Of a stretch of DNA of 64,000 nucleotides, positions 1,117 to 64,000 are shown piece after piece (the stretch's first letter is position 1; each line of letters starts with the position of its first letter). The position numbers and the translations under genes are program-made. Below the pieces are notes generated by a model. The model was not told the DNA's origin. It searched no databases and saw only the letters and a program-made list of their open reading frames with translations. This stretch comes from Eutreptiella sp. 'Long Island Sound 2002'. Lineage: Eukaryota > Protista > Euglenida. The DNA lies in assembly GCA_964036045.1 (NCBI GenBank), contig OZ038378.1, forward strand, positions 170,376,001-170,440,000, read 5' to 3'.

Positions 1117-49867
<48,751 letters not shown>

Positions 49868-58269: not shown

Positions 58270-59160
58270 ATAGGGGGCGCACCGTGCGCTGTGCGAAAAG
58301 CCGGCTGTTTTTCACCACCGGTAGCCACGGGTCCCAGGGTCCTGAATTCTGCACCCTACAGCCCCTGCCTGTACACCAGGGATTTTTTGTTTTAATCTGA
58401 TGCTTGCCACGGGTCCCAGGGTCCTGAATTCTGCACCCCCAATGCTGTTTTGAATGGATCATGCACGCTTCTGTAGGTGGGTGGTTTTCCAGGGGGGTTC
58501 CTGGGATAAACAACGTAATAATTGGCGCTGTGCCCGCGCTGTGCCCGCGCTGTGCCCACACTGTGCGAAAACGCCCCCATAGTACCTCATATGTCACAAA
58601 TCTCCTCGGCATGGAATATTTTTGGACCTTGACAAATCTTGAGAACTTGTTTGAGAGTTGGTTGTAAATCGCAAGGTGCAATTCTAAGCGAGGGCCATAA
58701 AGTCGCATGGGCCAATGAAAAGTTCTGAGACATTTGGTTTGGCACGCCGCTTGGAAAATTGGGCGTCCGCTGCTTGGAAAAAGTGCTTGCAAATTTTGAT
58801 GGGCGGGGCCGCTTGGGGGGGCGTACCGTGCGTTGTGCGCGCGCTGTGCACGCGCACAGCGCACAGCGCGCGGTGTGCGAAAAGTTGGCTGTTCTCCACC
58901 ACCGGGAGTTCGGTAAGTTCAGAAGATTGAAAGGACGTTATTGAATGGCTGCTGCAGTGGACGGGGCTATAGGGGGCAGAATTTAGGTCCCTAGGACCCA
59001 TGGCAAGCATCAGATGTTTGAATTTTTGAGTTTTGAATTGATTGTGCATGATTCCGCAGGTGGGTGGTTTTCAGGGTTGTTACCTGGATAATCACCGGAA
59101 TAATTGGCGTTGTGCGCGCGCTGTGCGCGCGCTGTGCGAAAACGCCCCCTGGGAAAAGTG
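58270..59160. repeat. Modular repeat with GCGCTGTGC arrays and duplicated blocks
   Basis: 58472-58577 resembles 59056-59150; CCACGGGTCCCAGGGTCCTGAATTCTGCACCC occurs twice. Confidence 0.8.
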
Positions 59161-60108
59161 CTTGCGAGATTGCATGCGAGGTTGCCGGGTGGGCTGGGCT
59201 TGGATTGGTGCTTGGAAATTGCCTAGGATGGATGCATGGGAAAAGTGTGCTTGGTGTTCCTACCAAGAAGTGCTCGGGAAAAGTAGTTCCAACAATACCA
59301 CGGTACACCATCACGTCGAAGCTGTTGTCTCCATGGACCAACTAAAAAAGTCGGTTGTGAATACCAGAGTAGAGATGTACCCCCTGCCCCTGTTGTAATC
59401 CGCCCCCTAATTTCACGCCGGTCTCCCCCAATGGGGGGGGGGGGGTCACCAAGTAATGGTCCCCCCCAACCCGAGTCCCAGTGTGACCTAAAGAAAAATT
59501 TTCTTCGGCGCCTAGTGTTTCCAATGCTTTTTTGGCCAAGTGACGCCCCCCCCCCCCCATGGGAGGGGGGGGGATTGCAAGGGGTAGGGTATTACAAGCG
59601 GGGCGGTGGGGGGGGGGGGGGGGGCAATACCCCTGACCAAATATACATTTTATGGAAAGCATATTTGTTACATGTGTCGGTGCAAGTTTATTGCTTTTGG
59701 GTACAACTGCACCAATCAATGTGGAAATTATGTGTGGGGATGGGGTTGATGTCAACCATTGATTTGATCTGCTTCTTCACAAGAAATGGTCAGAAATGGT
59801 CAACGGATGGAGGAAAATGTGGCGGAAATTGTCAATCTTAGGCGGCCGAAACAGGTACGCTTTTGTACCGCTCTTTTTAAAAAAAAAACACCGAGAAATG
59901 ATGTGGGCTTTTTCAGTGAATTACCGTGTTTTTTTGACCCTAATTTTTCATGCCTGTTTTTTCAGTTAAAAAAGGTACCTTTTTCCTGTCGTTGCAACAA
60001 ACGAGGCTCCTTTGTACTGGTGCGTACGATGGTATCTCAATAACGAAGGACAACCCACTGTGTGTCGCACCTCGTGTCGGTTATTACGCCCTTTTTTCTG
60101 CAACAAAT

Positions 60109-63100
60109 TGCGAGGCCTCGCAATGCAAGGATTCGATTTCATTTGTTTTACCAGAAGCGAATACACGGAAAATTCGCATACGGGTAATTACGACAAATAA
60201 CATTCATTTTCGAATGCGAGGCCTCGCATTCCATTTCGAAATATGCGCAAAAGGTATAGTTTCAGGAATCGAAATGCGAGGCCTCGCAATAATGGAACAG
60301 AAAACAATAAAATGGACAGATCCACCAACTACACAGCATGTGCATTCCCTTGATGCGGCGCTGCTGCATGGGCGCCCATACAGGTCCCGCCGGCATCTCC
60401 AGTTTTCATACTGTGGTCACCACTGGCTTCACTGCCCAACAGCTATGGTGGGCGGTTTGCAACTGGGTACCGCAGATGTGATCAACAAGAGAAATGTGGG
60501 ACCAGTTGACCGTTACCAGCAACCGAAAATGCGCACGCGCGGCGGATTTGCGCGCAAAGATCGCTATGCGCGTGTCGCGTGTGCAGCAATTTGCTGGCAC
60601 GAAATTTTATTTAACTGTAGCGTTAAAGGAGTCTGTTTTTTGTGGAATTGTATAATAAAATGCACATTTTTGATTCTTTTTTGATTTTGCGCGCTTGCTG
60701 CGACTGAACCGGAAAACACGGCACTCACTACGGAGGTTGAAAAGCAGACCAGAGAGCCGAGCCGCCAACCACTTCAAGGAGGAGTTCTTCAACTTATACA
60801 AAATTTTGCGCTTGCGATGCATACCCCAGCACCAGGACGAGGACGCCCCGGGTTTTGCCTCTATCGGTTGGCACAACAGGCGCCGGTTGCGCAGAACAGG
60901 ACTGCTGCGGCTGCGCGAGGAAACCATGAAGGAACGGTCCGCGGGAAAGATGCTTGAGACACGGCGATGGACGGAGAACCGGCAGGTTTGCATCTGGATC
61001 GACAATTGTTACATTAAGCAGTATGGAACGCATCCAACGATCCAGGATCAGTCGCAAAATTGCACAGCCCTTTGCGTCGTTGAGATTCCGTGCAGGTTGC
61101 CGTATTTCAGAGGACACCCAACCATAGATGTGCTCATCGGTAGCATCGGCAGTGTGGCTGCAGCGCTTGTCAGAACGAAACGGAGCTTTCATGGGATCGT
61201 GACAGACCTGGGCCTGCTTGCGGACAGACCTCCAGCAATACCGGGCATCAGGGCGCCGCTTGACATCGTGCGAGATCCACTACCAAATCCTGGTTGGAAG
61301 CCGCTGCTGCTGAGTACGCATCAGGTATCCTCGTACAAGGGCCTGGTTGAGGTGTTGGACTACATTGCATCGCTGTCAAACCACACGCACCCCATTGTGC
61401 CCATCCTCGTTGATGAGAACATACCCAAAAGATGCCTCAAGTTGCTGTACTCCGACAGAACGCAGCGGTGGAACTGGCACGAAAAACTGAAAAGGACTCC
61501 GGTCTTGTATGGCTGCTGGCATCCCTACAAATACCTTGTGACCAACGTATGGCGCCGCTTCCATTCGCTGTTTGTGTACTTCCGCTTTGGCCGCTTAGGA
61601 GTGGGAAAAACAGTAGGGTCGTACCCAAAGCTCAGAGTCATGGAGAGAACTATTGCCGGCATCCTCAAGTGTGCGCCGCATTTCCTGCGGCAGTTGCGCA
61701 GGAAAGCGAACAGGTTATGGGCTGTTGCCGATCACGGTGGGACGGCGATCGATCGACTGAAGAGTGAAGTATGTAAAGCAATGTTGAACCTTCTGCAGAA
61801 CTGGTGTCCGCTTGTCCTCTACTGTGGATTTCTCGTGAGACAATGCAACTGGTCTGGACGGCACCCTGGAACCGCCATCGACGCCCAAAATGTTTTGCGA
61901 CTTGTGTTCGTGCTTTTGATTGAGCTCGGGAGGGCTGCAGCTGAGCCTGTTGTGTATGTGAGGACCATCGGTGTTGCGTTGCTGCATTGGCAGACCTTCA
62001 ACAGCGGCCTGCCAGGATTGTGCTATGGTGAGGAGTTTGGCGAAGTCATGCTCAGTCGACTGGGGTCCATGAAGGATCGACACACTTGGGCTGTCACACC
62101 CAGCGACGTCGAAGATTTGTTTGTCCAGTTCTGCCCTGCGAGAATTAACAGACGCCTGCTGGTTAGTGGTTTGTCCTCCGACATCGAAACCGAGATCCGA
62201 CAGCGCTTGCACTCGTATGTTATTGACGACCGCCTGAGAATTCGGTACTGTCCTTGGAAGTCGGGTACGTCGACCATGGAGAGACACTGGGAGGCTGATC
62301 CAGATTTTCCGTCCGACCCTTACAGCGAGCCGGACGTGGACACATACAGAACTCTGTTAACCGATGTTTTGCGTACATTCCTGAGGCAGCCCCGGAATTT
62401 CTCACCTTCCGTAATACGATTGATGGACAACAAGGTTCCTCTGCGGTCTGATGCGCAGCGCACGAACATTCTGGACACAATCTGGGCCTTTACCGATGCA
62501 TAACATCGGGTTTAGGTTGATTCCCAACTCTGTTGTTGTTGTTGCGCGCACACCGGTGCTTTTGCTCACTACTGCGTGTTCGGAATGCGAGCCCTCGCAA
62601 TCGTCTTTTCAAAAAGTGCGTTTTTGACTATATGTTGTTACCTTAATGCGAGGCCTCGCAATACGAAGTAGGTAATTGAAGGCAAATACCTATAATGTCG
62701 ATTGCGAGCCCTCGCAATCAAAAAATAAATATGTACATTTCTCTCCCTTTTTACAGGCCTATTTCAACATGGCAGAGAGTTTGACGCCAACAAAAGCGGG
62801 TAGAGCATCACCAGACACGTCACAAGTACCATCCACGCAGGAAACGGTGCCAGAGGAGTTCTTGAGGTTCTACAAGAAGCCTTTGCAGGTGGAGGTTGAC
62901 GTTGGGAGCCTTTCCATCGACAAGAAGAAGAAGTACGGCCAGATCCGGAAGTATCAACAGACGCGAGTGGACGAGGTTATGAGAAGTCTTACGGCAAACC
63001 CCCCAGAGGAGCCCCTGACCGTGATTGCATGGCAATCACCAGGTACGTAACGCGGTCGCACCGCTGCTGTTTCATGTTCATCCTCTGAAGCCCATGTTTT

Positions 63101-63500
63101 CATCTCCAGCCGACGATTGGATCGTCATTGCAAAGCAGCACTGCGTCTGTGCGCTGAAAGCACTCCGAGACCAACGTCTTGAGAAGGGCCTCGACCCACC
63201 GCAGTGGATGCAAGTGGTGAAGGTCAACCTGTTGAAAACGGAAACCAGTTGGGCTACACGAGTAGCAATCGCCGGTCGGAAGCAGGCCATCGATCTAGAC
63301 ATCTCCGCCGTGCCACCGTCGGAAGCAGCTGACAACTTCCTTATGCATTTGCGAGATTCGCCGGCTGGGCCTGACGAGACTGCAAGGGAACACATTCACC
63401 GCACCATCCCGAAAGCCGCGAGCGGAAGTGCCTGGGTTCCACCACAAGTTTCCGACGATGAACTCCAAGTATGTTCCATTGTCGAATGCGAGGCCTCGCA
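60109..63500. promoter_or_regulatory. Seven copies of the palindrome TGCGAG(G/C)CCTCGCA
   Basis: At 60109, 60215, 60275, 62586 (variant), 62647, 62703 (variant) and 63487; none noticed elsewhere in the window. Confidence 0.7.
60695..62503 (+). CDS. Putative DDE-type transposase (Academ/DUF6589-like motif order); true start uncertain, first ATG at 60926
   Basis: VCIWID(103)N, VPILVD(240)ENI, LYGCWH(276)PYK, GE(446)EFGE(450)VMLSRL in an uninterrupted 1.8-kb ORF. Confidence 0.65.
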   Translation: MLRLNRKTRHSLRRLKSRPESRAANHFKEEFFNLYKILRLRCIPQHQDEDAPGFASIGWHNRRRLRRTGLLRLREETMKERSAGKMLETRRWTENRQVCIWIDNCYIKQYGTHPTIQDQSQNCTALCVVEIPCRLPYFRGHPTIDVLIGSIGSVAAALVRTKRSFHGIVTDLGLLADRPPAIPGIRAPLDIVRDPLPNPGWKPLLLSTHQVSSYKGLVEVLDYIASLSNHTHPIVPILVDENIPKRCLKLLYSDRTQRWNWHEKLKRTPVLYGCWHPYKYLVTNVWRRFHSLFVYFRFGRLGVGKTVGSYPKLRVMERTIAGILKCAPHFLRQLRRKANRLWAVADHGGTAIDRLKSEVCKAMLNLLQNWCPLVLYCGFLVRQCNWSGRHPGTAIDAQNVLRLVFVLLIELGRAAAEPVVYVRTIGVALLHWQTFNSGLPGLCYGEEFGEVMLSRLGSMKDRHTWAVTPSDVEDLFVQFCPARINRRLLVSGLSSDIETEIRQRLHSYVIDDRLRIRYCPWKSGTSTMERHWEADPDFPSDPYSEPDVDTYRTLLTDVLRTFLRQPRNFSPSVIRLMDNKVPLRSDAQRTNILDTIWAFTDA

Positions 63501-64000
63501 ATCCGAATATGGCTACTCATCCTCCTCATGTACAGAGTTATTCAGTCAAGGCGTTTGGACCGTTCTTCACTTGGGTGTACCATGCGGAGGACGCAGCGGT
63601 GACGTCGCTGGATAATTTCGAGAAGATGGACATGCCGGTGACGATGAACCAGCTGAAGTTCTTGCAGGGTCTGTACGAGCCATCGCTCCTACAACGGGTC
63701 GCCGCCGACATGTCGAGACCGAAAACGAACATCAAGGAAATCCAGGACCGGGCCTCTGCCTACCAGAAGCAGCAGTGGATCAATTGGCATTGGGGAGCCG
63801 CGCCGAACAACGTTATCCATCCGACCCGCAGTATGTTCCCCTCACAAGCAGGTAGGCAAACACGCAAACAAGGTAAACGCAACCTTTCCTATGTTTCCAG
63901 AGGCGAGTCCGGCAGAGAAGGTACCGTTGCACGACTGGGATGTCCTTTGGTTTCGGATCCCTTTGGGGGCTTGGCAGTGGAAACCTGAGGCTCCGTCGCC
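62769..64000 (+). CDS. Spliced gene with an N-terminal ParB/Sulfiredoxin-like domain; exons 62769-63042, 63110-63468, 63536-63830, 63901->64000
   Basis: Three GT-AG introns (67, 67 and 70 nt) join three otherwise separate frames into one ORF open to the window end; GQIRKYQQTRVDEVMRSL...PLTVIAW...WIVIAKQHCVCALKAL. Confidence 0.7.

Follow-up and report, generated by a model that had tools for sequence, protein, structure and literature searches.

The right end of a 64,000-nucleotide stretch of nuclear DNA from Eutreptiella sp. 'Long Island Sound 2002' (hereafter, the window) sits inside a multi-copy cut-and-paste DNA transposon, the left two-thirds of which are covered by the window. The element carries two genes on the same strand, an intron-less open reading frame (ORF1) for a predicted transposase and a downstream gene with introns (gene 2), together with a set of palindromic sites. 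We consider the best explanation of the whole to be a two-gene DDE (Asp-Asp-Glu) transposon of a new superfamily-level lineage, with the palindromes serving as sites for an element-encoded dimer, and assign this reading a probability of roughly 0.6. An earlier reading from the letters of the window (the sequence-only reading) had proposed an Academ-like transposon with a ParB-like partner gene; a search for copies and extension of the contig to the right bore out the transposon by revealing multiple copies, terminal inverted repeats (TIRs), and 5-bp target-site duplications (TSDs).

Boundaries, copies, and subfamilies of the element

The complete element spans 6,150 bp, from window position 59837 to 65986, and its right end, beyond the window, was reached by extending the window's own contig. 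This extension (L009; copies and contigs are designated L001 to L011) matched the window without a difference over 10,976 bases and added 9.6 kb rightward; an L009 coordinate equals the window coordinate minus 53024. Comparison of the window with five other copies of the same subfamily (subfamily A) showed that homology always started at 59836/59837, and homology with L008 stopped at window-equivalent 65986. The left terminus, CTTAGGCGGCCG at 59837, was also present in L001, L003, L004, and L008; the left end placed by the sequence-only reading at 59839 was therefore nearly exact, with the true terminus 2 bp to its left. The TIRs of the window copy are 33 bp long, match at 32 of 33 bases, and read CTTAGGCGGCCGAA[A/G]CAGGTACGCTTTTGTACC.

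Three complete copies besides the window copy were recovered, and the complete copies represent two subfamilies in all. Each of these four is flanked by a 5-bp TSD: TCAAT at the window copy, CATTT at L008, TGTGT at L005, and AATAT at L006. L005 and L006, which belong to subfamily B, have a length of 6.8 kb and end in perfect 23-24-bp inverted repeats, CTTAGCCCACGCAAACTGCACCC. Across copies, the element measures 6.2-6.8 kb, and its termini are CTTAG..CTAAG or CTATG..CATAG.

Approximately 20 relatives of ORF1 with 80-92% identity were found in one ENA assembly (ERZ25074135), spread over many contigs of Mb scale, and the same assembly contains subfamily B, with 36-40% ORF1 identity. ORF fragments of the subfamily-B gene 2 numbered at least 186, and a profile query returned 429, many of them from subfamily A. 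The copy number of the element in the genome of this eukaryote is tens to hundreds. The element thus combines the features of the TIR order of class II: TIRs, a TSD of fixed length, a predicted RNase H-like transposase with a candidate acidic triad, and dispersed copies. A segmentally duplicated, immobile host locus of two genes is next to impossible as an explanation; the presence of introns in gene 2, and nothing more, speaks for it, whereas the tens to hundreds of copies are dispersed over different contigs and nested with other transposable elements, and the sharp boundaries with TIRs and copy-specific 5-bp TSDs refute it.

L003 contains two subfamily-A copies on the same strand, within approximately 10 kb of each other (8755-12877 and 19174-21488). 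The second copy is without the left 590 bp, and the pair may reflect local reinsertion or segmental duplication.

ORF1 and the predicted transposase

ORF1 has 602 open codons in the window; the transposase that the element encodes is approximately 650-760 aa long, and proteins of its family mostly have 650-800 aa. An exhaustive profile search with ORF1 retrieved 1,443 clusters (E ≤ 1e-3), mostly of 650-800 aa, which stem from metagenome or transcript-sized contigs, and all sampled members of the family were unnamed or annotated as "hypothetical protein". Pfam returned no match for ORF1 or 42 diverse relatives, and a PDB sequence search with ORF1 returned none. A limited pattern scan with a 10-member alignment matched one JGI locus and found no relative in viral contigs or GTDB prokaryote genomes.

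Alignment of 43 members showed that D103, R186, P188, D190, R193, W201, D240, W275, H276, E317, P372, G378, R382, and E447 were invariant. The AlphaFold model of ORF1 (predicted local distance difference test [pLDDT], 87.6; predicted template-modeling score, 0.85) displayed strands and helices consistent with an RNase H-like core, after which comes a long helical insertion, and a helix begins at E447. Foldseek against the PDB placed the P element transposase at the top (probability 0.99, E 7e-3), followed by the Hermes hAT transposase (0.97) and then by ISCth4, RAG1, and Transib; the probabilities of non-transposase matches were <0.1. The model indicates that ORF1 is an RNase H-fold DDE transposase with an all-helical insertion, as in P, hAT, and RAG1/Transib, and conservation together with secondary structure suggests D103, D240, and E447 as a candidate catalytic triad. 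The sequence-only reading had staked its proposal on an RNase H fold in ORF1, and this fold was found by AlphaFold and Foldseek.

These structural matches also bear on whether a known superfamily of the same fold class with 5-bp TSDs, namely hAT5-type hAT or the Transib/CMCT clade, could include the element as a divergent member. The TSDs of hAT5 are 5 bp, and those of the CMCT clade, including Transib, are 2-5 bp, with CA..TG termini (PMC12730594), and the best structural matches of ORF1 include Hermes, RAG1, and Transib. However, none of the 43 members matched the hAT, RAG1, or CACTA Pfam models, and the termini are CT..AG here rather than CA..TG. Moreover, the family has no conserved cysteine/histidine cluster for the zinc sites of RAG1/Transib, and its conserved motif is G-x-W-H rather than the C/DxxH of hAT. 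We therefore regard such membership as quite unlikely.

Gene 2 and its conserved introns

Gene 2 starts at ATG 62769 on the same strand as ORF1. Its introns are GT-AG, as checked by spliced translation, and its product is approximately 780 aa long, with an acidic and basic tail. The downstream same-strand gene with three small introns described from the letters alone was confirmed by this translation and by its homologues, in which intron positions and phases (1, 0, and 1) are identical at only 23-31% protein identity. An origin of the palindrome-bearing introns as insertions of MITEs (transposable elements of the miniature inverted-repeat type) or "introners" was ruled out by the conservation of positions and phases at this level of identity.

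Substitutions between two subfamily-A copies were concentrated at third codon positions in both genes, with counts at positions 1/2/3 of 20/10/45 in ORF1 (p = 2e-6) and 21/19/52 in gene 2 (p = 1e-5), and divergence between such copies was 9.3% in the gene 2 introns and 3.9% in the exons. The codon-position bias and the lower divergence of exons than introns indicate that both genes were under purifying selection during lineage diversification, and these comparisons point to gene 2 as a real, selected protein gene.

Pieces of gene 2 gave no match to Pfam, NCBIfam, PADLOC, or PDB profiles at E ≤ 10, in searches whose sensitivity is lowered by the intron-split domain, and a Pfam search of all exons found no helicase or XPG domain. 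A tblastn search with exon 2 against phage records gave chance matches only. Two motifs are conserved in three lineages: GQIR, and approximately 55 residues after it [N/G/K]GQH, located where a helix-like segment begins. In all three lineages, gene 2 lacks the D and R of the DGQHR pentapeptide. An AlphaFold model of the N-terminal part, made from a subfamily-B read-through with an in-frame intron and a 13-row alignment, reached a pLDDT of 41.4.

Linkage of the two genes across lineages

ORF1 and gene 2 are linked in four DNA-verified lineages, which upheld the two-component architecture first proposed from the window. In subfamily B (L002, L005, and L006), the gene that comes after ORF1, in the same orientation, shares 27-31% identity with gene 2. 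L007, a 6.6-kb scaffold from another metagenome, encodes an ORF1 of approximately 26% identity and a gene 2 homologue (E 1e-18 to 1e-20) with the same three intron positions and a lysine-rich tail; its 21-bp inverted ends, CTATGGCGGCCCAAACCGACC (TIR CTATGGCGGCCCAAAC), resemble those of subfamily A. A gene 2 homologue also lies downstream of ORF1 in L011, from a sediment metagenome. A fifth case, a contig of ERZ1426817, has the same gene order, as read from its gene layout.

Palindromic sites

The 14-bp palindrome TGCGAGGCCTCGCA (TGCGAG[G/C]CCTCGCA) occurs seven times in the window, all between 60109 and 63500, against an expectation of 0 copies from 100 dinucleotide-preserving shuffles. The copies start at 60109, 60215, and 60275 upstream of ORF1, at 62586, 62647, and 62703 between the genes, and at 63487 in gene 2 intron 2; five are perfect, and those at 62586 and 62703 each have one mismatch. 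Counting over the 64 kb thus agreed with the earlier description of seven palindromes confined to the spacers and one intron. The full subfamily-A element contains 11 sites with the consensus ATTGCGAGGCCTCGCAAT, extending up to 26 bp in some copies, in a 3+3+1+1+3 layout (5' region, intergenic spacer, intron 2, intron 4, and after the gene 2 stop); the three 3' palindromes are located at window-equivalent 65384, 65490, and 65628. No palindrome was found in approximately 14 kb of L009 flanks or elsewhere in the window. The palindromes bear no likeness to the terminal repeats.

Comparable sites were found across the family. Subfamily B has 10 sites, AGTGCGCGAGGCCTCGCGCACT, in a 3+2+3+2 layout, of which the middle three are in gene 2 introns 2, 3, and 4. 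L007 carries the palindromes GCGCGCCTAGGCGCGC and GGCGCGCTAGCGCGCC at equivalent places, L011 carries TTCGCTCCATGGAGCGAA, and L010 has three inverted repeats, AGTCCGCGA-N4-TCGCGGACT, directly after the ORF1 stop. The sequence of the site differs by lineage, yet it is always palindromic, about 18-26 bp long, GC-rich, and present in approximately ten copies per element. Between L009 and L008, the sites showed 1 substitution in 198 bp, whereas the remaining non-coding DNA had 132 in 1,771 bp (P = 4e-6), and the sites of subfamily B showed 3 substitutions in 220 bp, compared with 4.75% (P = 0.006). These comparisons indicate that the palindromic sites evolve under purifying selection and are a conserved family-wide feature.

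A fourth upstream palindrome is present in L008 (6929-7049, compared with window 60213-60290), where it was made by a 60-bp tandem duplication of a site-bearing unit. Site arrays can thus grow by local duplication.

Proposed function of the palindromes

The palindromes are probably bound by a dimeric protein encoded by the element. Such a binder fits best: two subfamilies that share one genome have systematically different extended palindromes, and host DNA surrounding the copies lacks the motif. In the proposed mechanism, the transposase would recognize the TIRs through its helical N-terminus and then cut and paste the element with a 5-bp staggered cut of the target. The palindromes would act as operator-like sites to which an element-encoded protein binds as a dimer. 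This protein, in all likelihood the product of gene 2, may join the two subterminal regions for transpososome assembly, control both promoters, or do both. End pairing is suggested by the symmetric subterminal site clusters, and autoregulation by those in front of each gene. Gene 2 may have kept its introns partly as the sole places inside the gene able to house sites.

Alternatively, the palindromes could be promoter, enhancer, or terminator elements read by the host, or RNA or DNA hairpins acting on transcription or splicing, and gene 2 could have another role. Site clusters lie immediately upstream of each gene and also behind gene 2, which is consistent with this alternative, and the L010 repeat, with its variable 4-nt center, is hairpin-like. 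Subfamilies A and B, in one genome, also have a common 12-bp core, GCGAGGCCTCGC, which a host factor could recognize. However, the flanks of this core differ systematically between A and B and are palindromic in each, and neither the other 60 kb of the window, host genes included, nor the flanks of any locus examined contain the motif. Furthermore, sites in three different introns and both subterminal regions are not in promoter positions, and perfect palindromes without a spacer yield only short stems. On balance, a host-read or hairpin function appears unlikely, albeit not remotely so.

Several further points, like the shared core, weigh against a new two-gene superfamily with an element-encoded palindrome-binding dimer. 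The Foldseek E-values of ORF1 are marginal (best 7e-3) and the template-modeling scores low (0.30-0.35), and the reading of the candidate catalytic triad draws on conservation and secondary structure rather than geometry. Gene 2 has no recognizable DNA-binding domain in Pfam, NCBIfam, or PADLOC, and the assignment of its product, or of any other protein, to the palindromes is purely inferential. At the sequence level, the element may also belong to a known, poorly characterized superfamily (Academ, Sola, or Novosib).

Classification and comparison with known systems

The element most likely represents a new superfamily-level lineage of DDE transposons, because its TSD length, its termini, and the available profiles fit no described superfamily; this placement is provisional, as the profiles were drawn from sources other than Repbase and Dfam. 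The P element, Hermes, and RAG1/Transib share with ORF1 a DDE core in which a large all-helical insertion lies between the second Asp and the Glu. The element differs from P element, hAT, and Transib in its termini (CTTAG/CTATG rather than YARNG or CA..TG), in its conserved second gene, and in the lack of a sequence-profile match.

Repeated subterminal motifs are bound by TnpA in En/Spm, and a Myb/MADF accessory protein acts with the transposase in PIF/Harbinger. En/Spm (CACTA) and PIF/Harbinger are functional analogues of the two genes and repeated subterminal sites described here. In contrast to the present element, CACTA and Harbinger have TSDs of 3 bp and transposase Pfam domains that are absent here, whereas the sites of the present element are long, perfect palindromes that are also located between the genes and in introns.

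We also weighed a third Academ lineage, with a partner gene for a ParB/Srx-fold protein that loads on the palindromes as ParB does on parS. Academ elements, like the present one, are large eukaryotic DDE transposons with an extra function, and no Pfam model exists for Academ (PMC5751038), so that a Pfam miss is expected. Academ lineages also differ from each other in the second enzyme and in TSD length (PMC10045372). The ParB component of this proposal draws on the Q-x-R (GQIR) and Q-H motifs of gene 2, which recall two features of the ParB/Srx-fold domains DndB and DUF262, a QR pair and a DGQHR/DGQQR motif (PMC4619093), and on the multiple palindromic sites of about 18-26 bp. However, Academ TSDs measure 3-4 bp in AcademX and 9-10 bp in AcademH, with XPG or a helicase as the second function (PMC10045372), whereas the TSDs here are 5 bp, Pfam found no XPG, helicase, or PHD domain in ORF1, and the second gene encodes an unrecognized protein, a contrast drawn from published descriptions of Academ. 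With 5-bp TSDs and no helicase or XPG domain in gene 2, the "Academ-like" label of the sequence-only reading was not supported.

Gene 2 had no ParBc, DndB, or DUF262 match at E ≤ 10 and no ParB/Srx chains by PDB profile, the D and R of DGQHR are missing in the three lineages, and the N-terminal model is unusable. Like bacterial ParB-parS, the element links several copies of a palindrome, here of 16-26 bp, to a gene, and the N-terminal Q-x-R and G-Q-H motifs of gene 2 are reminiscent of the ParB/Srx fold; the bacterial system differs from the present one in that the latter is a eukaryotic nuclear transposon with no ParA-like partner and with a fold that has no profile or structural support. The "ParB/Srx-fold" label could thus not be confirmed for gene 2, for which a resemblance at the motif level is left as a lead, and the third Academ lineage with a ParB-type partner is very unlikely. 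A bolder proposal retains the new lineage: an unrecognized transposon superfamily, widespread in aquatic microbial eukaryotes, whose accessory protein would be a ParB/Srx-type DNA clamp, possibly a nucleotide switch, that pairs or marks the ends by loading on parS-like palindromes distributed over the element, some of them in introns kept for this purpose. We consider this proposal a long shot.

Defects of the window copy and other copies

The window copy is defective. L003, L004, and L008 hold 157-167 more bases at the junction upstream of ORF1, and L001 holds them together with a nested MITE. In L008, the missing stretch encodes MPRNIAHRAKRE..., which includes the ATG; of the 55 residues located ahead of the TTG at which the window's frame begins, it supplies approximately the first 48. 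The window copy is without the ORF1 ATG and N-terminus, and the full protein has approximately 657 aa; the 602-codon ORF that had been called intact is 5'-truncated by a 163-bp deletion. Beyond the window, this copy's gene 2 is interrupted at two places by nonsense codons, TAA and TAG, where L008 has TAC and CAG. Other copies are broken otherwise: L008 by frameshifts, L001 by the nested MITE and a downstream insertion, and L002 by a nested 1.6-kb element.

The insert at the ORF1 start of L001 (8583-10000) is a non-coding sequence of approximately 1.4 kb whose ends, GGGATGCAG.../...CTGCATCCC, are inverted and whose subterminal repeats are rich in GAATTCG; it looks like a MITE of another family. 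The 1.6-kb insert of L002 (12265-13868) has 77-bp TIRs (97% identical), lies between ORF1 and gene 2, and is absent from L005 and L006. A 244-codon ORF at 59950-60684 was considered as a gene and ruled out by 1-bp indels and the 60-bp tandem duplication between copies.

Features of the element and genomic surroundings

The features of the window copy are listed in Table 1.

Table 1. Features of the transposon copy at the right end of the window (window coordinates; positions above 64,000 are window-equivalents)
Feature	Position	Strand	Basis and remarks
Left TSD copy TCAAT (5 bp)	59832..59836	.	TCAAT again directly after the right terminus, 65987-65991 (L009 12963-12967)
Left TIR CTTAGGCGGCCGAAACAGGTACGCTTTTGTACC (33 bp)	59837..59869	+	Reverse complement at 65954-65986
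5' non-coding subterminal region	59870..60673	+	Three 18-bp sites, 60107-60124, 60213-60230, and 60273-60290
Junction of 163-bp internal deletion, this copy only	60673..60679	+	Comparison with L008, L003, L004, and L001
ORF1, predicted DDE transposase, 602 of ~657 codons, 5'-truncated	60695..62503	+	Family, conservation, fold, and codon-position bias
Intergenic spacer	62504..62768	+	Three sites, 62584-62601, 62645-62662, and 62701-62718; two sites here in subfamily B
Gene 2 exon 1, conserved GQIR motif	62769..63045	+	Homologues are exon 1 in subfamily B and in L007
Gene 2 intron 1 (64 nt, phase 1)	63046..63109	+	Position and phase kept in subfamily B (L002 14157-14225) and L007 (3625-3675)
Gene 2 exon 2, K/G-Q-H motif	63110..63468	+	Alignment; tblastn to L002 and L007
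Gene 2 intron 2 (67 nt, phase 0), palindrome 63485-63502	63469..63535	+	Homologous subfamily-B intron carries the B palindrome
Gene 2 exon 3	63536..63851	+	Spliced translation and homologues
Gene 2 intron 3 (49 nt, phase 1)	63852..63900	+	Position and phase kept in subfamily B and L007
Gene 2 exon 4, cut by window end	63901..64000, on to 64541	+	L009
Gene 2 intron 4 (palindrome 64563), exon 5, then right TIR	beyond window; exon 5 to ~65364	+	L009

Exons of a TOR kinase gene occupy window 17600-31500 (e.g., 20043-20816 and 29548-30303, + strand), with FAT (E 8e-17) and FKBP12-rapamycin-binding (FRB; E 9e-34) domains, and this gene identifies the window as eukaryotic nuclear DNA. Just left of the transposon (59400-59640), several G or C homopolymer runs of 12-19 nt, partly inverted, may be another repeat. 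A 109-bp dispersed repeat is present at 58447-58555 and 59030-59137 (83% identical), and direct and inverted matches of 33-44 bp are present at ~58324-58438 and 58972-59015. Rfam and tRNA scans of the window found nothing.

Copies on other contigs lie among retroelements (L001 12727-21800 and L002 1-8700), including a long interspersed nuclear element with endonuclease and reverse transcriptase and Ty3/gypsy-type genes for reverse transcriptase, RNase H, and integrase. A G-rich insertion at L001 12726 cuts short one subfamily-A copy.

Implications

The list of recognized eukaryotic DNA transposon superfamilies comprises only approximately two dozen entries, and the unnamed family of 1,443 clusters, with a TSD length and termini of its own, would add one; a new family would also improve the repeat annotation of protist genomes and metagenomes. 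The layout of the element is unusual in that it combines an intron-less transposase gene, an accessory gene with deeply conserved introns, and approximately ten lineage-specific palindromes that are under selection, some of them located in these introns. It may also represent introns being kept for the cis-acting DNA sites that they carry. If the ParB/Srx-clamp proposal were true, a bacterial partition-type module for DNA loading would have been co-opted by a nuclear transposon. Under the preferred reading, with palindromes bound by an element-encoded dimer, the family would offer a natural system for the co-evolution of a transposon-encoded DNA-binding protein and its sites.

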